This document shows, piece after piece, positions 7,829 through 26,107 of a stretch of DNA of 64,000 bases. A program made the position numbers and the translations under genes. Within the stretch, counting starts at the first letter, position 1; every line of letters begins with the position of its first letter. The notes below the pieces were generated by a model. That model was given only the letters and a program-made list of their open reading frames with translations. It did not search any database and was not told the origin of the DNA. The stretch lies in sequence record PP496438.1. One strand, written 5' to 3'.

Positions 7829-10225
7829 TTAAATATGCTTTCGTGGGGCGAACTGGCCGATACGAACCACCGAGTCTTGAGCAACGTTCTGCGCGAAGTA
7901 AACGGTAACACGAACAGTCACCGCAGTCTCCGTGCCGTCCCACGTGTAGCGCTGAGTCTCCAGCGATGTCAATGGAACAACGGCGGGCAGGGTGTACGGA
8001 TCTACGTACTTGTCACCGTCTCGGAAGTAGAACACGGTTGATGCGGAGTTGACAGGTTTGGTTACCAGTACCTCGGTAGTTACCCCGAGGATACCGGACG
8101 TAGTACCGTCTACCCGAATCGCACCCACCAGACTGAACACGTCACCCACGGCCATGTTGGCAAGTGAGAAGGTAGTCGTCGGGGAGAACGCCAGATACGC
8201 AGCGGCTACACTAGGCGTACCCCCGAACTGAATTACCTGGTATTCACCGGGACCGTCAGTACGTACTTCTTTGCTCCAGGTGGTAGTCAACCCGGTGAAC
8301 GCCGAGCCAGCAGCCTTGAAGCCGGTCGCAACCACCGAACCTGCTGTGGGGTTGACCGAAGCCGTAGACATGTTCGAGGAACCGAGCAGCAACGGATTCG
8401 CGCCGAGAGATCCGGTCTTGTTAACCGCGCTGTAGAGGTCACCCGAGTCAACTGGCAGGTCAACTGGCAGGAACTCCAGTCTACGAACCAATGGCAGGTA
8501 GGGTTGAGCGAGCTTGAACGCACCTTGTACGTGTGGGTGCAAACCATCACGCAGGTCGGCTTCCACGATAGCGTCCCAGGTATTGACTACCGGAGTCCAC
8601 TTCGACACCTCGTTGGTGATCCAGTTGTGCACTTCGATGTGGTCTGCGAGTGCTTGGCCGGTAAGTGCCTTGTCGCCGAAACGGGGAGTCTCGTTACCCA
8701 CGATAACGATCTTGCCAGCACGTTGCAGGCGGCGGATGATTGCCGTTATGTTACGTTTGGAATCACCTGCAGTCATTGCTGGGGCAGAAGCGGTACGGTC
8801 GTTGGTACTTCCGAGGAAGAACACGATGTCGCCTACCGCAGCAGCAACTGCCTCGACACGTGCCAACATCTCAGCAGTGTTCTGGCCGCCGATACCGAAG
8901 TTCAGCGTGTAAGGCAACCGGATCACGCCGGTGAGCATGGCTACCCAGTTGTAGATGCCATAGTTCTTGGTCGAGAACGCGGTGGATGATGCGGTTGCCG
9001 CGAGGCCTGTAACCGCGTGGTTCATCTCAGTACGGCTGTCGCCGAAGAGGATGACTTCCCGAAGCAAAGGTCGGGACGGGAACACCAGCTTGTTCCAAGA
9101 TCCATTGGATCGAGTGAACTGACCTGGAAGTGATGCACTCACATCCGAGATCAGACCGGATAGATCTGTTTTGCTTGCCAGCCCTACCAGATCTGTTCTA
9201 CTCGCCAGATTAGCGATTTCGGTCTTGGTCGCAGCCCCTGACACGCCCTGACTCAGCGTACTAAGCGAGGTGGACAACCCGTTGATCGTGTTGATATCTT
9301 GAGTGCCAGTATGAGTACCCCGGTCACGCAGACTCGCATCGGTGTCGTTCTTGGTGGCGCCGACAGCAACCCCCGTGAGCTTGTCCTTGTCTGCGGTTAC
9401 GTAAGCATTGGTATCAGGGTTGCTTTCGTACAGCGTCTTGACCTGGGAAGCTGTCACCGGGGTGGCGCTGCTGGAACTCAAGACCCATTTGTTGTCCGAC
9501 GCGTCCCATACGTATCGGGCTACATCTGCACCTGCAACGTCCACGTCAGCATAGTTACCAGCGACCGGCAGCGATACGCCTGCGGTGAGTGCGGACAGCG
9601 ACGTGAACGTACCCCGGAACATCGGACCTTCGACACCCGCCAGCTTGTTCTTCTCCGCTTGGGTGAAGTTGGCCTGGGACAGCGCGTAGCCCGTCTGCTT
9701 TTCTACCTTGGTGTCCAACAAGTTCTGTAAAACGGCCCGAACATAGGCATCGTCGTAGTTGAACAGTTCGGCAAGCTTATTCTTCTGAGCCGCGTCGAAA
9801 TCGTTGGTGGATAGCATCTTGCCGGGGACTACGGCAACTGCACCGAGGTCAGCAGCCGTTTTCGGAATGTAGGGGGCATCAACCAGATCCCCGAACAACC
9901 CGGTGGTAGCCACCTTGGCGAGTCCGGGAATGTTACCCCCGCCACTGGAACCCTCACCTGCCGCGACTGCCGCCGCCGTACTGGTGCTGATCGAGGGGTC
10001 CATGACTCGACGGTGGAACTCTTGAGCGTTGGAATATGAGAGGATCGAGTCTTCGGAGCAAACCAACACGCCCCGTGCTACCTGAGTCCTCAACATCTCG
10101 AAGCTGTTCAGTACGAATTTTTCCGAAGGATAGAAGAAATTACCCTCCGTCAAAGTAGTACCTTCGATGGACAGTCCCTTCGGGGCGGAGGCCGTTCGTT
10201 TGAAACCAATAGATGATGCTGCCAT
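7829..10225 (-). CDS. Tail spike/fibre with SGNH (GDSL-like) esterase domain and C-terminal beta-sandwich
   Basis: SGNH blocks: ILFGDS (I), GIGGQN (II), LGSTND (III), DGLHP (V); N-terminal half has fibre-like motifs. Confidence 0.75.
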   Translation of the reverse strand: MAASSIGFKRTASAPKGLSIEGTTLTEGNFFYPSEKFVLNSFEMLRTQVARGVLVCSEDSILSYSNAQEFHRRVMDPSISTSTAAAVAAGEGSSGGGNIPGLAKVATTGLFGDLVDAPYIPKTAADLGAVAVVPGKMLSTNDFDAAQKNKLAELFNYDDAYVRAVLQNLLDTKVEKQTGYALSQANFTQAEKNKLAGVEGPMFRGTFTSLSALTAGVSLPVAGNYADVDVAGADVARYVWDASDNKWVLSSSSATPVTASQVKTLYESNPDTNAYVTADKDKLTGVAVGATKNDTDASLRDRGTHTGTQDINTINGLSTSLSTLSQGVSGAATKTEIANLASRTDLVGLASKTDLSGLISDVSASLPGQFTRSNGSWNKLVFPSRPLLREVILFGDSRTEMNHAVTGLAATASSTAFSTKNYGIYNWVAMLTGVIRLPYTLNFGIGGQNTAEMLARVEAVAAAVGDIVFFLGSTNDRTASAPAMTAGDSKRNITAIIRRLQRAGKIVIVGNETPRFGDKALTGQALADHIEVHNWITNEVSKWTPVVNTWDAIVEADLRDGLHPHVQGAFKLAQPYLPLVRRLEFLPVDLPVDSGDLYSAVNKTGSLGANPLLLGSSNMSTASVNPTAGSVVATGFKAAGSAFTGLTTTWSKEVRTDGPGEYQVIQFGGTPSVAAAYLAFSPTTTFSLANMAVGDVFSLVGAIRVDGTTSGILGVTTEVLVTKPVNSASTVFYFRDGDKYVDPYTLPAVVPLTSLETQRYTWDGTETAVTVRVTVYFAQNVAQDSVVRIGQFAPRKHI

Positions 10226-19213: not shown

Positions 19214-19666
19214 TCAGTATCCTTTGGCCTTGATAGCCATAAGTAGGCGCAAGACGTGCTTGCATACCAGTGGAACCATCGAGGCGTTCTTGACGATGGG
19301 CTTCTCACCGTTGGAGTACACGATGTCGGCGGCACCTACACGGTACAGCGCCACTTCCCACGTGAAGCAATGGTCTTCGCAGTCACACTCCACCTTGATA
19401 CCCGCAGCACGGCTCACCTTGGAGGCACGATCCAGCGCGGTGATCTTCACGCGGCGCTTCTGCGGGTTGGTGTTGATCCGGGTGCGCCGACTCTTAGCCG
19501 TGCACTCGACGACGAGGTTGCCTTCCTTGTCAACGGAACGCTTTGGGGAATACAGGCGAACATCACGGCTGCGCTCATACGTGTAAGGCATGTAGCGCAC
19601 GGTTTCGTTGATCAGCTTCTTGAGGGGCAATCCCTTCTTACTTTTTTGCTTTACTACGCTCGCCAT
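19214..19666 (-). CDS. SWIM-type zinc-finger protein
   Basis: ECDCEDH ... VCKHV (CxC-xn-CxH); basic N-terminus; probable start ATG19666. Confidence 0.7.
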   Translation of the reverse strand: MASVVKQKSKKGLPLKKLINETVRYMPYTYERSRDVRLYSPKRSVDKEGNLVVECTAKSRRTRINTNPQKRRVKITALDRASKVSRAAGIKVECDCEDHCFTWEVALYRVGAADIVYSNGEKPIVKNASMVPLVCKHVLRLLMAIKAKGY

Positions 19667-21239
19667 CGCTCTGCTTCCGTCTCTTAGCAACCCGATCCCG
19701 CGCTTCCTTGGAAGCCTTCGAGCCACGTTTGGTTGAAGTACTGGATGCCTTGGTATGACCCTTCGGTGCCCCGGTCTTGGACTTCACGCCGTGCTTGACC
19801 TTGGCTACCGTGTCGGACTCGTAACGCTCCAGAATGCTGGTGATACGGTCACGTGCGTCTTCCTCGGTCATCTCCGGAACAGGATCCCCGTTCTCGTCCA
19901 GCACCTGTGTTTCAGGAACTGCGCCGAACAACGACGAGGTCTTGCCGGGGCCAGTGGTCGGCAGCGAGTTCAGGAAGAAGGAATACTTGTTCCGAGTCGC
20001 GTCGTAACCTACGTCCACTACGCTGTCGATCAGATCGTACAGCTTCATCGACTCACCCTTGCCACCGCGAGTCTTCAAGTGACCGTTTACCACCTCACGC
20101 ACTTCCTTGTCGGTAGAGTTCATGATGATCTCAGTCATCGATGTCACAATCCGATTGTAGGTGTACATGTTGTGGTAGGCCAGCAGGAAGGTGGACACGT
20201 TGCCGCCAATCACGCTGAGAACGTCGGTGTACTTGATCGCGGTGCACACTGGGCAGTTGCACGGCAGATGGTTGAACGGGCTCGGGCTGTTCACCTTGTC
20301 GAACATCTTGAAGAAGCCCGGCGGAGTGCTGATGTGCTCTTGGAAGTAGTAGCCCTTGGATACCGATTCCTGCAACCACGTAGAGGCGTCACTAGTGATC
20401 AGCGGGGCCAAACCTTTCTTCGCCATGTAGATCAGCGGATATACCAGCGAGAGCTTGGCGACACCGAGCATGTGGTACTGCTCGTATTTGCGACCGGTAA
20501 CCATCTGCTGGATGATCTTGGCGATGGCAGTCATCTGGGTATCGTAATACGTGCCACCCATGGCCAGACGAGTTATGTCGTCACGCTCTACCAGTTCACG
20601 GTAGCGGCTTACTTCTTCCTGCGTGTTACCGTGGAAGATGTTCATCAGCTCCAAACTGGGACGCTTGTTCTGCATCATCAGTTCGGTGTTTGCAGCCTGC
20701 ACTCGACCCAAGCGCTGATACAACTCTGGATCGTTGAAGTGCATCGGGATATCGAGCACGATACCGATGTCTGCATTGTTGTTGTACCACTGGATGATCT
20801 CCATCGGGTCTAGGTAGTCGAGACGACCCATACCGAGCTGGAAACCTCCGGAGTCCGCGACGATGTGTCGAGACTTGTCAGCGAATGCAGTCACGTCACC
20901 TTTACGAGTGTTGTGAGAGATACTGTCTTTGTTGATGTGCTGGGTGTAGTTGACCATGTACTGGCTGACGCCCATGTCTCGCGCCGTCAGATCGTCAAAC
21001 GCACTCATGTGATACATCTCGTCGAACGACCCATCTGCCCAGCGCGTGGACACAGCATGGTGGGTATTGGACACGATGAACAGGTCACGGTCGGGACACT
21101 TGAGGAAGATATGGTTGCCACCGATTTCCACTAAGTCGATCTTGTTGGGGTTCTTGGCGTAACGGACGTATACCGAAATGCCTCCATGCGCGGGGTAGAA
21201 CACTCCAGCAGGCACCAGTTTGAATTGACCAGGCGTCAC
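19638..21239 (-). CDS. dpdA: TGT-family transglycosylase, probably DpdA (7-deazaguanine insertion into DNA)
   Basis: DSGGFQ, VLDIP, LAMGG, HMLG, DASTW (nucleophile position) and Zn site CNCPVC...H; GTG start with AGGAG 8 nt upstream. tRNA versus DNA substrate cannot be read from motifs alone. Confidence 0.7.
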   Translation of the reverse strand: MTPGQFKLVPAGVFYPAHGGISVYVRYAKNPNKIDLVEIGGNHIFLKCPDRDLFIVSNTHHAVSTRWADGSFDEMYHMSAFDDLTARDMGVSQYMVNYTQHINKDSISHNTRKGDVTAFADKSRHIVADSGGFQLGMGRLDYLDPMEIIQWYNNNADIGIVLDIPMHFNDPELYQRLGRVQAANTELMMQNKRPSLELMNIFHGNTQEEVSRYRELVERDDITRLAMGGTYYDTQMTAIAKIIQQMVTGRKYEQYHMLGVAKLSLVYPLIYMAKKGLAPLITSDASTWLQESVSKGYYFQEHISTPPGFFKMFDKVNSPSPFNHLPCNCPVCTAIKYTDVLSVIGGNVSTFLLAYHNMYTYNRIVTSMTEIIMNSTDKEVREVVNGHLKTRGGKGESMKLYDLIDSVVDVGYDATRNKYSFFLNSLPTTGPGKTSSLFGAVPETQVLDENGDPVPEMTEEDARDRITSILERYESDTVAKVKHGVKSKTGAPKGHTKASSTSTKRGSKASKEARDRVAKRRKQSDGERSKAKK

Positions 21240-21263
21240 TGCGCGTACTCCTATGTAAGGGTT

Positions 21264-21298
21264 AAAAACCCGCGTCCCAGTTTCCCAGAACGCGGGTT
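21264..21298 (-). terminator. Intrinsic terminator
   Basis: Stem AACCCGCGT/ACGCGGGTT with UUUUU on the - strand. Confidence 0.7.
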
Positions 21299-21332
21299 GG
21301 TTACACGCTATTTACAGGCGTGTTGGCCCTAC

Positions 21333-21911
21333 TTACTTCGAGTCGGCAGCTTTGTTTCCTTTCTTGGCTTCCTTTTCCGCAGCCTCGGAATCGGCTTTGG
21401 TGAAGATCGCTTGGATCAGGTGTGCAGCGGCACGTGGGTTGTGCGAGTTGCGCTCCAGAATCGTGCGGATCTCTTGCAGGCTGGCACCGGCGCCCGACTT
21501 GCCGGAAGTGGACTTCGCGCCTTCGTCGTGAGCATTGATCTCGACGGCGTGGAGTTCGTCTTTGGTCAGCAGTGTCAGGCCGTTGGCTTGCACGTAGCGG
21601 TCTACGACCAGCTTCGTGTCGGACTCAGACAGGTCCTCCGGGTCGAACGACTTGAGCATGGGGTCAGTACTGACTTGACCTTCCACGTCGGAACCGATCA
21701 CGTTGGTGGCTTTGGCCAGGTCTTCCGGGGTGGCTTTGTCTTTCGCAGCCGCTTGACCTGCACCGCCGGTATCGATCGCGCTCGCATCGGAAGAAGTGGA
21801 AGGAGTGGGCTTGGCCGAGGTTTCAGACTTGGCAGCAGTTTCCTTCGCTTCGGTGGTCGCTTTGGTTTTGGTCTTTTCTTCGGCAGCAGGTTTCGAGGAT
21901 TTAGCAGTCAT
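21333..21911 (-). CDS. Hypothetical protein with Ala/Lys/Thr-rich disordered N-terminus
   Basis: Probable start ATG21911 (AGGAG upstream); strong coding-like codon bias. Confidence 0.7.
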   Translation of the reverse strand: MTAKSSKPAAEEKTKTKATTEAKETAAKSETSAKPTPSTSSDASAIDTGGAGQAAAKDKATPEDLAKATNVIGSDVEGQVSTDPMLKSFDPEDLSESDTKLVVDRYVQANGLTLLTKDELHAVEINAHDEGAKSTSGKSGAGASLQEIRTILERNSHNPRAAAHLIQAIFTKADSEAAEKEAKKGNKAADSK

Positions 21912-21992
21912 GGTGAATCTCCTAACATTGGAATTACCACCCAAGAGGCCTCTCGGTGTGGGATGTTACAGTGCAGCACTTGCGGTAGACGG

Positions 21993-23090
21993 TTACTCCG
22001 GGTTCCGGTCGAAGCCTTTGCCGCGCATGGCGGTGAAGCTCTTCTCAACCAGCCGGTGGATCGATTTCGGCAGCTTCTCACCCATGGCGTACCAGCGCAC
22101 GGCTTCACAGAAGAATTCCGATGGGTTCTTCTGGCTGTACTCACCGATAGGTGATTCCATGATGTTGACCGGCAGGTCAGTGGTCGGCCACACGGCGTCG
22201 GGCACCAGATTGCCGGACAGGAGGATGTTCAGCTTCTCCTCATCCAGATAGTGGTTCTCGCCGACGTACGTGATGATCGCTGCCAGAGCCGCTTCATCTT
22301 TCTCGTTCATGCTGGCGTAGGCCAGTTCGGTGTTGCCCTTCTTGATCAGCGTACGCACGATCCGATCCAGCTGCTTCTTCGACGCCGTATCTTCTATTAC
22401 GTACTTGTGGTACTCGCTGATCCAGAGTGCCTGAATGGAATCAGGCATCAGTCGGCTCATCAGTCCGTGGGCGAACTCATGCGCAACCAGATGCTGCACG
22501 TAGTTGACGTTCTGAGCTTCCTTCGGTCGCAGGCGAACACGGTCCATTGGCTCTTTCGCCATGTTCACCGTGGTGTAGTCGCCGTCGTACTTACCTTTCG
22601 GTTCATGCAGCTCGATGCGCAGTGGGAAGATAGCGTCCAGTCCCCAGCCTTTGTACTGCTCGTACACCTTGTCCAGCCCGGTCATCAAACCTTTGAAGCT
22701 GGCTTCGTCCAGATCGGGGATGTAGCTGAACACCGGACCGTAAGGCTTGTCGTCGAAGCTGTCATGGCGCAGCAAAATGGTGCAACCGTAGACGCTGCCC
22801 GGCTCGGGGCGTGGGCCAAGGTTGAGGATGACTTGAGCGTGCGGGACACGGGTGAGCATCTCGTCGTCCAGCTCGTAGTCTTCCGACTTGTTCAACGCAC
22901 CCAAGTCGGCGCCGGTGACTTCGGAACCTTTAAGGCTGTACACACGCAAGGCCAGCTTGCGGTATTTAGTTTCGCCGCCGTCATCATCATTCTTGGCCGA
23001 CTTGCTGATCTTGACGATCACGATATCCCCGGCGTTGACCGGGACCAACGGCACCTCTGGAGCTGCCTTATTACGGTCTTTCTTTTTCAT
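21993..23090 (-). CDS. Zincin metallopeptidase-like protein
   Basis: LVAHEFAHGL (HExxH) and a distal YSQKNPSEFFCEA third-ligand motif as in lethal-factor-like zincins. Confidence 0.7.
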   Translation of the reverse strand: MKKKDRNKAAPEVPLVPVNAGDIVIVKISKSAKNDDDGGETKYRKLALRVYSLKGSEVTGADLGALNKSEDYELDDEMLTRVPHAQVILNLGPRPEPGSVYGCTILLRHDSFDDKPYGPVFSYIPDLDEASFKGLMTGLDKVYEQYKGWGLDAIFPLRIELHEPKGKYDGDYTTVNMAKEPMDRVRLRPKEAQNVNYVQHLVAHEFAHGLMSRLMPDSIQALWISEYHKYVIEDTASKKQLDRIVRTLIKKGNTELAYASMNEKDEAALAAIITYVGENHYLDEEKLNILLSGNLVPDAVWPTTDLPVNIMESPIGEYSQKNPSEFFCEAVRWYAMGEKLPKSIHRLVEKSFTAMRGKGFDRNPE

Positions 23091-23109
23091 CGGTAGGGTC
23101 TCTTGCGGA

Positions 23110-23397
23110 TTAAAGGTTGGCAGCGAGTAGTTCGCAGAACTGCTGCACAGTTAAGTACTGGGCCTCGGACTGCTTGACCAGTTCACTGACCAACTTATCT
23201 GGAACGTCACAAGCAATGCCTTCGTAGTCCTCCAATGCCATGGCAAACTCTACCCAGTCCAGCGAGTCAAGGCCCATATCGATAACCAGTGTGTCTGGCT
23301 GGGCCATGTAAGGAGCGGTGTTAACGTTCAACCTCGGTGTGGGCAGCGCGTGCAGACATTGGATGACAGCAGATGTTACAACATTGATGTGAAGCAT
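23110..23397 (-). CDS. Acyl carrier protein (phosphopantetheine attachment site Ser45)
   Basis: DMGLDSLDWVEFAMALEDYEG versus E. coli AcpP [20 protein letters not shown]; acidic, 95 aa; C-terminal LTVQQ matches the ACP helix-4 start. Confidence 0.8.
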   Translation of the reverse strand: MLHINVVTSAVIQCLHALPTPRLNVNTAPYMAQPDTLVIDMGLDSLDWVEFAMALEDYEGIACDVPDKLVSELVKQSEAQYLTVQQFCELLAANL

Positions 23398-23420
23398 GTA
23401 TCTTACCTATGACGAATACG

Positions 23421-23451
23421 AACAAACCCGCCAGACAGTAGCCTAGCGGGT
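23421..23451 (-). terminator. Possible intrinsic terminator upstream of the ACP gene
   Basis: ACCCGCTAG/CTGGCGGGT stem followed by TTGTT on the - strand. Confidence 0.5.
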
Positions 23452-23459
23452 GCTGGGGT

Positions 23460-24080
23460 TTAGTTTACCGCGACTTCAACCTCGGGTGCTTCCGGGATCG
23501 CATTGTCTCGGATACGGGCCGCCCAAGGCTTGTCAGCGAACGTGCCCCGTTTAAGGTGAAGGTGCGGCAGGATCGGATCAGGGATTGCCTGATTGGGCAG
23601 CAGCGTCGTCTCGATGCGCTTTCCATTACGCTTGCGGGCGCCCAGCTGAAAGATGTACGTTGGGACTCGACTGCCCGCCACCACCTTCGGGAACCTGCTA
23701 TTCAGGGTAAGCTGATGTTCTACGTCTTTTGCTTGATGCAGGAACACTACACCGACCAGGTTGGGATTCGCCAAGATGACGACATCCCGTTTGACCCCGG
23801 CCAGCTTGTTGTACTCTTTACCGTCAGCCCGATACGCAATCTCACACGGCTCGGACATATCGCCCCACGGCATCTCCACGCCGACCGGATCGTTCCCCAA
23901 CTCATCCAGACAGTATGAAGCGGCATGGGTTTCAGCACCTCGGCAGCGGCTGTTAATGATCGCCACCTCCTTCGGGTCGAGTCCCATGTGCTGAATCACA
24001 GAATTCAAGCATGCAACCATCAAAGGATAGGTCGTGAAACCATAATCCCCGATCACGGCAATCAGCTTCTTATCGGACAT
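23460..24080 (-). CDS. SLOG-superfamily (YspA/DUF2493-like) nucleotide-binding protein, divergent
   Basis: IAVIGDYGF..YPLM, IINSRCRGAETHA (cf. GGARGAD), EMPW, YNKLAGVKRD (cf. YN..AG..RN). Confidence 0.65.
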   Translation of the reverse strand: MSDKKLIAVIGDYGFTTYPLMVACLNSVIQHMGLDPKEVAIINSRCRGAETHAASYCLDELGNDPVGVEMPWGDMSEPCEIAYRADGKEYNKLAGVKRDVVILANPNLVGVVFLHQAKDVEHQLTLNSRFPKVVAGSRVPTYIFQLGARKRNGKRIETTLLPNQAIPDPILPHLHLKRGTFADKPWAARIRDNAIPEAPEVEVAVN

Positions 24081-24127
24081 GGTAGTGCTCCTACAGGTAG
24101 ACTTATGGGTAGTGTTGACCCATTGAA

Positions 24128-24748
24128 TTAGTAGGTATAACGGGGAGCTGCTGGAGTCTCAGGAACGACCAGTTGGTGCGTAGGGAAGAGTGAACCGATC
24201 ACGATGCGGAAGTATTGGCTTTCGCCGCACTCCGGGATGTTGAACGACATGAAGAACTTGCCGTCGTCCTTATCGTTGCCGCTTTCCAGCCCCATATCCT
24301 CCCAGCGCAGGATCTTCTGAGCTTCCAGATACTTGGTATCAGCGATCTCGACGATGGTGACTTCGCGCAGCATGGTCATAAGGCTGGCGCTACCCCGCAG
24401 TGCCTTGAGTGGCAAGCGGTAGTACTCGTAGCACAGATCGTTGAGCACCTTGAGGAACGTCACGTCGCTTACCTTGGGCAGCTTGGTGAAGTCCACCGTG
24501 TGAGAGTAACCTTGTGAACCGAGCTTGCCGCTGACGTTGCGAGACATAACAATCTCCCGTTGTGACATTCCCTTGTGGATTTTAGCCAAGGCTTCCCGAA
24601 CGTCGTCCTGCGCATCACGGGCGGCTTGCTGCGCCTCGGTCAGCGGCTTGTGATGATGGCCGCGACGAGAGCTGGCGTGCTGGAAGGCGTCGTTGTTGGA
24701 CGCGTTGTGCTGAGTGCGGTATGCCGGGGTAGGTGCTGGAATAGTCAT
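24128..24748 (-). CDS. Hypothetical protein
   Basis: Probable start ATG24748 (AGGA upstream) within track ORF 24128..24790. Confidence 0.6.
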   Translation of the reverse strand: MTIPAPTPAYRTQHNASNNDAFQHASSRRGHHHKPLTEAQQAARDAQDDVREALAKIHKGMSQREIVMSRNVSGKLGSQGYSHTVDFTKLPKVSDVTFLKVLNDLCYEYYRLPLKALRGSASLMTMLREVTIVEIADTKYLEAQKILRWEDMGLESGNDKDDGKFFMSFNIPECGESQYFRIVIGSLFPTHQLVVPETPAAPRYTY

Positions 24749-24758
24749 GGTCTTGTTC

Positions 24759-25859
24759 CTATAGGTTGCGGACTTTAATGAGGTTGCCACTGGATGCGGC
24801 GATTAACATGGTCTTGGTTAGCCCTCGCTTGCTGAAGCACAAATCGTCTTCGGCCAGCGGGCAGCTGAAATAATCATTCTTCATGATCTCGTCGTGATCC
24901 GCCTTGCAGTGGCAGGGACGCAACTTTTCGATCTTGTCGAATGTGGTCAACAATGCTGATTTACTGCGAACTTTCAACAAGTCCCTCCAGAGCTCCCATC
25001 CCAGCTCATATTCTGCCATGAGTTTTCGCAGTTGGCGCTTCTCTTTATCTGGCAGGATATCACCCACAATAACGCGGCGATGGAAGTTGTCTCGGGTGAT
25101 GTAGATCAGCATCCAGCCTTCAATGACGATGTTGTGCATCATTTCAAGCAGCACAATGTACGACTTGATCTGGGGCACGTTGGCTTTGGCTGGGAACACG
25201 CCACCTTCTTTCTGGTGCTTCATCACCTTGTAGCTGGACGTGGTCTTGTAGTCGATAACGTAGTACTTGCCGTCAAGCCAGAGCAGTCCGTCGGTGTGAC
25301 CCGTGATGTTCTTGCCATACCGAACTGCCAGCTCTTCATAGCGGAAGAACTTGTGCCCACACTTGACGCACTTGCCGGGATGGGGCGAGAACTCGTGGTT
25401 GTGTTTACACTTCTTGCAGTAGTAGTCGCCGACGATGGCCCGCTTGAGGCCCTTCATAAATTTCTGGCGACTCAGCTTCTTCTTCGTGGCTGTATCAAGG
25501 ACCTTGGCGTTACGGCGTGCCGTGTCTCCCATGGCGAATGGGGTCAGGCTGACAGCGTGCTGGAACGTCTCGTGCACCGCCGTACCAATGGACGTATAGA
25601 AGCCGCCACCGACAACTTCTTCCTCACGTTCCATAACCAGACCGCTTTCCAGCGTGGCGATGGCATGGTAGATCGGGCAGAACGGGAACGAACTAGGATG
25701 AAGATCCATCACCCGTGTTTCAGACATGTGGCGAACGTCCGTGACTTTGCACGCCTCCGCCATAATGCGTTCCATTTCTTTGAGCGCGTCGGCCATCGGA
25801 CCAGATGCTACCTGATGCCGACTCACTAACCCGATGTTTGCTTTTCCGAAACCTTTCAT
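24759..25859 (-). CDS. Cas4/RecB-like PD-(D/E)xK exonuclease with zinc-ribbon insert
   Basis: HPSSFPFCP, GTAVH, GHTDGLL..VIDYKT, QIKSY, C-terminal Cys cluster; insert CKKC..CVKC. Confidence 0.8.
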   Translation of the reverse strand: MKGFGKANIGLVSRHQVASGPMADALKEMERIMAEACKVTDVRHMSETRVMDLHPSSFPFCPIYHAIATLESGLVMEREEEVVGGGFYTSIGTAVHETFQHAVSLTPFAMGDTARRNAKVLDTATKKKLSRQKFMKGLKRAIVGDYYCKKCKHNHEFSPHPGKCVKCGHKFFRYEELAVRYGKNITGHTDGLLWLDGKYYVIDYKTTSSYKVMKHQKEGGVFPAKANVPQIKSYIVLLEMMHNIVIEGWMLIYITRDNFHRRVIVGDILPDKEKRQLRKLMAEYELGWELWRDLLKVRSKSALLTTFDKIEKLRPCHCKADHDEIMKNDYFSCPLAEDDLCFSKRGLTKTMLIAASSGNLIKVRNL

Positions 25860-26107
25860 ACTTCAACCCACCGGGCTAACTTGAACCGTTGAGACTTACT
25901 CATGGTTAGCAGTAGGTGGCCGAGTGCTTCGCCTTCCTGATCCCCTACCTGCCTAGCATTGTTGATGCACCAGTTCACGTGACCGTCGGCCATGTTGAAA
26001 TCTTCCAGTACGATATGCAGGCTACCCCATGTAGGGTTCTTCTTGTAGTAGCGAAGAAAGCGCTCCAGTACATCAGGTGGCACTGGCTTATTCTTTGGTG
26101 CAGTCAT
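25856..26107 (-). CDS. Small hypothetical phage protein (GSLHIVLED motif)
   Basis: 83-aa ORF overlapping the nuclease start. Confidence 0.6.
   Translation of the reverse strand: MTAPKNKPVPPDVLERFLRYYKKNPTWGSLHIVLEDFNMADGHVNWCINNARQVGDQEGEALGHLLLTMSKSQRFKLARWVEV

Follow-up and report, generated by a model that had tools for sequence, protein, structure and literature searches.

The window analysed here comprises 64,000 nucleotides of sequence record PP496438.1, and a window position is obtained by subtracting 62,000 from the record position. Positions 19600–25900 match Pseudomonas phage vB_PpuM-SKa-4 (PP496438.1, 202,022 bp; hereafter SKa-4) with 100% identity. This lytic jumbo myovirus infects P. 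putida and belongs to the Estonian CEPEST collection (PMC7616413); eight sister isolates show 91.6–98.7% identity across the same segment. This segment holds a block of genes, labelled SKa4_00105 to SKa4_00111 in the record, that runs on the minus strand from a PD-(D/E)XK nuclease gene to a gene for a DpdA-like transglycosylase. Within the block, between the genes for a SLOG protein and an HExxH zincin metallopeptidase, lies SKa4_00108, which encodes a small protein with the features of an acyl carrier protein (ACP) and is the subject of this analysis (Table 1). The record names only a ‘peptidase’ and a ‘CRISPR/Cas system associated protein’ and lists the remaining products, including that of SKa4_00108, as hypothetical proteins. 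We found no paper treating SKa4_00108 in the literature.

Judged by its sequence, SKa4_00108 is an ACP, and several results agree on this, each of them modest alone. The protein contains VIDMGLDSLDWVEFAMALEDYEG, with Ser45 within a DSL motif. Its motif GLDSLDWVEF, beginning G42-L43-D44-S45-L46-D47, aligns with the DSLD of solved ACPs, which confirms the canonical ACP motif with Ser45 that the first-pass annotation of this DNA had reported. The recognition helix reads D44-S45-L46-D47-W-V49-E50-F51...E56, and the protein as a whole is acidic (13 Asp and Glu vs 3 Lys and Arg). The match to the Pfam family PP-binding (PF00550) was a borderline pass (21.3 bits, cut-off 20.8, E 3e-4), and PHROG 5934, ‘acyl carrier protein’, was matched with E 4e-7. 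NCBIfam model TIGR00517 gave E 5.5e-6, but only 26.2 bits vs an equivalog cut-off of 70.45, by which measure SKa4_00108 is not an AcpP orthologue. Solved ACPs, including the ACPM subunits of complex I, were found by phmmer with E 1.2e-5 and are collinear with the protein across residues 10–78; E. coli ACP reached E 0.011 only. Profile–profile comparison (hhalign) with canonical jumbo-phage ACPs gave 96% probability and E 2e-9, and the best look-alike in the protein atlas was a mostly viral PP-binding cluster (score 0.94, 202 shared features). Two AlphaFold2 models, one from a single-sequence run and one from a run on a five-row alignment, place helices at residues 3–17, 45–59, 67–79, and 84–94, which would fit the ACP topology, but both are of too low confidence to be relied on (predicted local distance difference test, pLDDT, 50.8 and 47.5). 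A HMMER scan of 1.84 billion representatives with SKa4_00108 returned its own cluster and generic PP-binding domains, with no further family members, and word-indexed homologue searches with the ACP, SLOG, and zincin proteins returned their own clusters and one metagenomic relative, nothing else.

Compared with bacterial AcpP (TIGR00517; E. coli, Helicobacter pylori; 1ACP, 1L0H, 8JFN), SKa4_00108 is collinear over helices I–III and carries its Ser at the N-terminus of helix II. All acidic positions of helix II on which AcpS, Sfp, and fatty acid synthase (FAS) enzymes rely are conserved: AcpS recognition requires ACP residues D35, E41, and E47/E48 (bioRxiv 10.1101/2025.01.28.635281), and the counterparts of these E. 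coli residues in our alignment are D44, E50, and E56/D57. However, the identity to AcpP is below 30%, the score against TIGR00517 is 26 vs 70 bits, a fab operon context is missing, helix I contains a proline and is poorly charged, and a syntenic orthologue lacks the Ser (see below). Phage ACPs of PHROG 5934, e.g., acpP of phage GR7B, RSL1 ORF083, and gp339 of Achromobacter phage Motura, are likewise small, acidic, single-domain proteins with a DSL motif, and are found in large lytic phages without genes for a phosphopantetheinyl transferase (PPTase), FAS, or polyketide synthase (PKS). GR7B acpP is even the positional orthologue of SKa4_00108 in the same SLOG–ACP–zincin block. SKa4_00108 differs from these phage ACPs in its score against PF00550 (21 bits vs 46–58 bits for RSL1, Motura, and PhiXhv-12), in a helix II that reads VEF where the others have IE(I/L), in additional residues that follow helix II and precede helix IV, and in being annotated as a hypothetical protein only. 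Phage-encoded ACPs are already known as an annotated class, and SKa4_00108 appears as a very divergent, previously unlabelled member of it. In the literature searched, no demonstrated function is reported for phage ACPs (PHROG 5934; GR7B acpP; RSL1 ORF083; jumbo phages, PMC13573597).

Among SKa-4, Illi-2, and Peetri, the ratio of non-synonymous to synonymous substitution rates (dN/dS) of the gene is 0.06–0.09 (14–28 synonymous vs 5–9 non-synonymous changes), and the DSL motif and helix II are unchanged. The reading frame is uninterrupted in 9/9 isolates. The low dN/dS argues that SKa4_00108 is a functional gene. Overall, we regard SKa4_00108 as a real, selected, and very divergent type-II ACP.

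Table 1. Genes and features of the SLOG–ACP–zincin–DpdA block of SKa-4, in window coordinates
Feature	Position	Strand	Evidence
PD-(D/E)XK (Cas4-like) nuclease, first gene of the block, divergent from the primase gene	24759–25859	-	PF12705 E 2e-8; ~43–45% identity to Vibrio phage orthologues
Hypothetical protein upstream of SLOG, syntenic block member	24128–24790	-	open reading frame and synteny
Divergent YAcAr-type SLOG protein, 206 aa	23460–24080	-	YAcAr E 0.2; PHROG 289 E 4.5e-4; tblastn to GR7B
GC-rich hairpin, 11 bp stem, then UUUGUUCGU	23426–23451	-	-22.6 kcal/mol, z -2.4
Orphan phage ACP, SKa4_00108, 95 aa, isoelectric point ~4	23110–23397	-	PF00550, PHROG 5934, TIGR00517, solved ACPs
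HExxH zincin metallopeptidase, 365 aa	21993–23090	-	PHROG 17197 E 3e-40; HEFAH 204–208
Hypothetical protein in the zincin–DpdA interval, no family match	21333–21944	-	positional counterparts in GR7B and GR11A
DpdA-like DNA/tRNA-guanine transglycosylase homologue, annotated 456 aa	19638–21008	-	PF01702 32.6 bits; TIGR00449 E 9e-7

Gene order, distribution, and partner enzymes

The block is shared with two Vibrio coralliilyticus phages, GR7B and GR11A, in which a primase gene is followed by genes for PD-(D/E)XK nuclease, two hypothetical proteins, SLOG, ACP, zincin, a hypothetical protein, the tRNA-guanine transglycosylase (TGT), a further hypothetical protein, and a sigma factor. The gene at the ACP position of GR7B is already annotated as acpP. 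The zincins of SKa-4 and the Vibrio phages are only 35% identical, yet the SLOG–ACP–zincin order and its tight spacing are kept: the gaps between ACP and zincin measure 3–19 nt, and in GR11A the two genes overlap by 8 nt. ACP genes adjacent to a zincin gene were seen in three independent lineages (SKa-4, GR7B, and GR11A). The Xanthomonas phage PhiXhv-12 has a backbone of PD-(D/E)XK nuclease, P-loop kinase, zincin, a small open reading frame (ORF), a DpdA homologue (E 4e-80), a hypothetical protein, and a sigma factor without an ACP, and its ACP gene lies 67 kb away. The ‘kinase’ at the SLOG position of PhiXhv-12 is a P-loop protein, and SLOG homology was rejected; the slot upstream of the zincin is replaceable, with SLOG in SKa-4 and an unrelated P-loop kinase-like gene in PhiXhv-12. 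As GR7B and GR11A share the whole long backbone, the proximity of ACP and DpdA looks like inherited gene order of a primase-to-sigma backbone rather than a sign of shared function.

We compared these loci with the zincin-bearing jumbo phages PaBG, Lu11, HRDY3, RSL1, BcepSauron/Saruman, Motura, BCSR5, and the PhiXhv phages. Clear ACPs are encoded by RSL1, Motura, PhiXhv-12, BCSR5, HRDY3 (as a tandem pair), and Lu11; they are mutually related, with E down to 1e-18, and lie at different sites among hypothetical genes. A search for an ACP gave only sub-threshold matches in BcepSauron and none in PaBG, and small ORFs upstream of the Lu11 and HRDY3 zincins were rejected as ACPs. An all-against-all comparison of the neighbourhoods of jumbo-phage ACPs revealed nothing shared except the ACP itself, and the genes adjoining the other jumbo-phage ACPs have no homologue in SKa-4. 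Because no neighbour gene is shared besides the ACP, orphan status seems to be the rule for jumbo-phage ACPs, and orphan ACPs look like a recurrent trait of zincin-bearing jumbo phages. DpdA homologues are present in GR7B, GR11A, PhiXhv-12, Motura, and BCSR5, and absent from HRDY3, PaBG, Lu11, RSL1, and BcepSauron.

The window had been described as lacking a PPTase, an acyltransferase, and any FAS or PKS gene, and this description extends to the whole 202-kb genome. Profiles for PPTase (PF01648), AMP-binding ligase (PF00501), ketosynthase (PF00109), and FabD-type acyltransferase (PF00698) found nothing at E ≤ 1 in SKa-4, GR7B, and GR11A, while control genomes gave positives; a PPTase was also missing from the five further ACP-bearing jumbo phage genomes tested. 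Matches to PP-binding numbered one in SKa-4, one in GR7B, and zero in GR11A. The acyl-related genes of the SKa-4 genome are limited to a GDSL/SGNH esterase, i.e., the ‘lipase’ at 7829–10225 of the window, which is part of a large virion-type protein, and the genome’s sole GNAT (record 150963–151787), about 66 kb from the ACP gene. The GNAT was rejected as a client of the ACP, since the Vibrio phages with the ACP have no such GNAT. Because the phage encodes no loading or client enzyme, SKa4_00108 would have to work through host proteins.

Gene order, distribution, and missing partners bear on a proposal of the first-pass annotation, namely that the ACP is a donor for DNA hypermodification, which would deliver an acyl or aminoacyl group onto a 7-deazaguanine base installed by DpdA. 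The ACP gene is two genes away from dpdA with a spacing kept in GR7B and GR11A, SKa-4 has a full preQ0-pathway gene set including two QueC-like genes, and all DpdA-positive phages examined (6/6) carry an ACP or ACP-like gene. However, the proximity belongs to an inherited backbone that exists in PhiXhv-12 without an ACP, the ACP and DpdA genes of PhiXhv-12, Motura, and BCSR5 are 23–94 kb apart, and RSL1, Lu11, and HRDY3 have an ACP and no DpdA homologue. The preQ0 genes of SKa-4 are 75–115 kb from the ACP gene, profile searches of the whole genome found no adenylating, condensation, or ACP-dependent acyltransferase enzyme, and the DpdA of GR11A is 77% identical to that of GR7B, yet the Ser of its ACP is gone. 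SKa-4 shares the DpdA-like transglycosylase and preQ0-pathway genes with phage 7-deazaguanine systems (DpdA with FolE, QueD, QueE, and QueC; preQ1 derivatives), but our comparisons give no coupling of ACP and DpdA past inherited synteny. To our knowledge, no described phage 7-deazaguanine DNA modification system uses a carrier protein. The first-pass annotation had named missing linkage of ACP and DpdA in related genomes as grounds for refutation; with linkage confined to one clade, the donor proposal largely fails by this measure, and we consider it unsupported and very improbable.

Replacement of the attachment serine and apparent loss of the gene

The ACP orthologue of GR11A (MT366761.1 125958–126287) has a 10-residue insertion ahead of the motif, and the motif itself reads ILDDLDLVEF, so that Asp replaces the attachment Ser and the D-x-L-D-x-V-E-F helix is retained. 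The attachment codon is GAC in GR11A, AGC in GR7B, and TCG in SKa-4, and GAC is two substitutions away from AGC. The GR11A protein has no other Ser before the motif and is no longer matched by the PP-binding profile. As PPTases need a Ser and leave even the S36T variant of E. coli ACP unmodified (PMC3340395), the GR11A protein cannot bear a pantetheine arm at the motif site. The columns invariant among SKa-4, GR7B, and GR11A (D40, D44, L46, D47, V49, E50, F51, E56, and D67) are concentrated on helix II, the docking site for ACP partners including SpoT (PMC3340395), and the three proteins are otherwise 25–31% identical. Between GR7B and GR11A, the ACPs are 28% identical vs 80% for the PD-(D/E)XK nucleases, 77% for DpdA, 68% for SLOG, and 62% for the zincins, i.e., the ACP diverges much faster than its enzyme neighbours. 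Outside the genus, the nearest relative is an uncultured one, represented by Logan contigs of ERR13715691 and SRR23468754. Its zincin and SLOG are 63% and 61% identical to those of SKa-4, and 23 nt separate the SLOG stop from the zincin start, which leaves no ACP at that position in two independent samples; this relative is known from contigs of 1.5 kb and 3.3 kb alone, and its ACP may have moved rather than been lost. With Asp replacing Ser in GR11A and a gene that the nearest relative seems able to do without, what this small ACP family consistently requires appears to be the docking surface and not the prosthetic arm.

The same two changes could also mark SKa4_00108 as what is left of a captured ACP gene, decaying or without function, which would fit its missing relatives outside its own cluster among the 1.84 billion representatives. 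This is hardly credible in view of a dN/dS of 0.06–0.09 and an invariant motif and helix II within the Pseudomonas phage genus, a frame intact in all nine isolates, and the retention of the gene since before the Pseudomonas and Vibrio phages split.

An unlikely alternative, with more in its favour, is a productive auxiliary carrier: loaded by the host PPTase, the phage ACP would serve host FAS or lipid A enzymes and thereby sustain or redirect lipid synthesis in the 3-h latent period after shutdown of host expression. A canonical DSL motif with an acidic helix II, the conservation of the Ser in nearly all jumbo-phage ACPs, and the purifying selection on SKa4_00108 are in line with such a role, and annotators usually class phage ACPs as auxiliary metabolic genes (PHROG 5934; PMC13573597). 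However, outside helix II SKa4_00108 has diverged strongly, and residues are inserted behind this helix and ahead of helix IV; its fast evolution (28% identity between GR7B and GR11A vs 62–80% for the neighbours) is unlike that of a housekeeping carrier serving a dozen enzymes. The Asp of the GR11A orthologue and the apparent loss of the gene from the nearest relative likewise speak against this role. Few proteins are as abundant and stable as host AcpP, and supplementing it seems needless.

The conserved position of the gene points to another alternative, which we rate as possible though rather unlikely, i.e., a phage-internal module in which the zincin, and perhaps the YAcAr SLOG protein too, has the ACP-like protein as its subunit, chaperone, regulator, or substrate-presenting partner. 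In that case, the ACP fold would be used as a protein-interaction domain, like mitochondrial ACP in complex I and LYR-protein complexes. Order and spacing of SLOG, ACP, and zincin are conserved between the Pseudomonas and Vibrio phages, the GR11A ACP gene overlaps the zincin start, a conserved hairpin divides SLOG from the ACP–zincin pair, and the Asp of GR11A implies that the prosthetic group is not always required. Yet the zincin occurs without an adjoining ACP in no fewer than 10 other lineages from jumbo phages or metagenomes, the nearest relative has no ACP in the 23 nt between SLOG and zincin, and the ACPs of other phages are encoded far from their zincins.

Neighbouring genes of the block

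The zincin next to the ACP and the DpdA gene two genes downstream, both pointed out before, hold up in the profile searches (Table 1). The zincin consists of a beta-rich N-terminal domain and an HExxH motif (HEFAH 204–208), with E329, located in a distal ExxAE-like motif, as the predicted third zinc ligand. Across 11 homologues, E329 never varies, and H204, E205, and H208 vary rarely or not at all. The protein matched no curated Pfam family; weak profile matches to M1 and lethal-factor catalytic motifs and atlas leads to ATLF/M90 are leads only for a resemblance to the lethal-factor/MtfA type of gluzincin. The zincin is kept in 11 jumbo-phage lineages, IMG/VR scans with it gave no matches, and a metagenome scan turned up a single distant zincin locus, which lacks an upstream ACP.

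The assignment of the upstream neighbour as a SLOG protein is weak for the SKa-4 protein itself and draws on its positional orthologues, which exceed the YAcAr (PF10686) cut-off of 28.2 bits in GR7B (29.8 bits) and GR11A (28.5 bits); the SKa-4 protein is linked to its GR7B orthologue by tblastn (E 8e-4). Taken alone, it stays below the cut-off with 11.8 bits (E 0.2), and its family motifs GGR, GAD, and AG..RN are degenerate. The GC-rich hairpin is positioned after the SLOG stop codon and before the ACP start codon. Illi-2 and Peetri share the stem unchanged, while the downstream spacer is variable; the hairpin may act as a terminator/attenuator or RNA-stability element that sets ACP and zincin apart from the upstream genes.

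The DpdA-like protein exceeds the PF01702 cut-off of 26.3 bits and is about 50% identical to the TGT proteins of GR7B and GR11A. The same genome encodes two QueC copies, QueE, and FolE (record 159–162 kb and 194–197 kb), and this combination of a TGT superfamily protein with preQ0 genes predicts an activity on DNA. Upstream of the annotated start at 21008 (456 aa), the ORF continues without a stop as far as a GTG at 21239, from which 533 aa would be encoded; as the Vibrio orthologues are annotated with 529–538 aa, the true start in SKa-4 may lie further upstream. Outside the window, large plus-strand ORFs (253–694 aa) surround both QueC-like genes (record 157918–171273). They gave zero Pfam or PHROG matches and might extend the 7-deazaguanine pathway in a way not yet explored. 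The second QueC-like protein comprises only the C-terminal half of the QueC domain and has an amidotransferase-like PHROG match. Between zincin and DpdA, the protein encoded at 21333–21944 combines a long N-terminal half rich in Lys, Glu, Ala, Thr, and Ser, which is probably disordered, with a small C-terminal domain, and evolves fast (dN/dS 0.15–0.25, the maximum of the block).

A possible action on host ACP-binding proteins

The interpretation that we favour, tentatively and at somewhat less than an even chance, is that SKa4_00108 is a host-directed competitor or sink whose recognition helix engages host ACP-binding proteins. The PPTase of P. putida would recognise apo-SKa4_00108 and pantetheinylate it at Ser45; such loading by the host PPTase is likely, because the acidic residues contacted by the PPTase are all kept (D44, E50, and E56/D57). 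Made in quantity, SKa4_00108 would rival host AcpP for access to the PPTase or to client enzymes via helix II, and host acyl-ACP-dependent metabolism or signalling would be perturbed during the unusually long infection cycle. The protein would not be a carrier for any phage pathway. Action through host ACP-binding proteins is the simplest mechanism in view of the intact loading motif and helix, the lack of phage enzymes, the replaceable Ser, the rapid divergence, and the occasional loss of the gene. A decoy ACP had been one of the proposals of the first-pass annotation, and it gains some support here as the most economical one, given that no phage partner enzyme was found, the docking helix is invariant, and an orthologue has Asp at the attachment site. 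Structural and regulatory ACPs (mitochondrial complex I, LYR complexes, and the E. coli ACP–SpoT pair) provide precedents for docking of helix II beyond shuttling (PMC3340395), but they still need an (acyl-)pantetheine arm, and the SpoT-critical positions of E. coli ACP differ in SKa-4.

An observation on phage Aura could be related. Aura is conspecific with SKa-4, has a latent period of 3–3.5 h, and infects P. putida lacking the alarmone (p)ppGpp less well, with a longer latency there (PMC12814882); its ACP is identical to that of SKa-4. As support for a host-directed role, this phenotype is circumstantial only. Other peculiarities reported for these phages are that Aura is strongly blocked by cryptic prophages of the host and that DNA of the G3 jumbo phages is hard to purify with a standard kit (PMC12814882, PMC7616413).

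Several points weigh against a competitor or sink. With less than 30% identity to any cellular AcpP, SKa4_00108 resembles the host protein poorly outside helix II, and it has F51 and A52 at the positions of E. coli L42 and V43, whose mutation abolishes SpoT binding by E. coli ACP (PMC3340395). The Ser is kept in SKa-4, GR7B, and all other jumbo-phage ACPs, and a true carrier function fits this equally. The tight and conserved adjacency to the zincin (gaps of 3–19 nt, 8-nt overlap in GR11A) could mean a phage-internal partnership, and both structural models of SKa4_00108 are of low confidence (pLDDT 47–51).

A variant without need for the arm, in which SKa4_00108 is a pantetheine-independent mimic of holo-ACP, is decidedly unlikely. 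Here, helix II together with a negative charge at the Ser position would dock onto one host regulator or enzyme, e.g., the TGS region of SpoT or the sole host PPTase, and the charge would be provided by the phosphodiester in SKa-4 and by Asp in GR11A. If true, the phage would set the (p)ppGpp level or lipid metabolism of its host, which would explain the weaker infection of (p)ppGpp-null cells by Aura. Because the SpoT-critical L42 and V43 are Phe and Ala in SKa4_00108, we keep targeting of SpoT, appealing as it is in view of Aura, as a minor case only.

New in this analysis are the recognition of an ACP in the CEPEST G3 phages, a natural Ser-to-Asp orthologue with the docking helix kept, the absence of the ACP at this position in the nearest relative, and the view of the DpdA neighbourhood as synteny and no functional module. 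The latter is a caution that adjacency within a conserved jumbo-phage backbone is not a guide to function. Orphan ACP genes recur in many large phages, where they are routinely called ‘auxiliary metabolic genes’. SKa-4 offers a tractable system for them, with the non-pathogenic P. putida as host, nine close isolates in a published collection, and the Asp orthologue and the relative without the gene at this position as natural comparisons. The partners and cargo of its ACP would tell if ACPs of phages serve as carriers, as decoys, or as structural adaptors.

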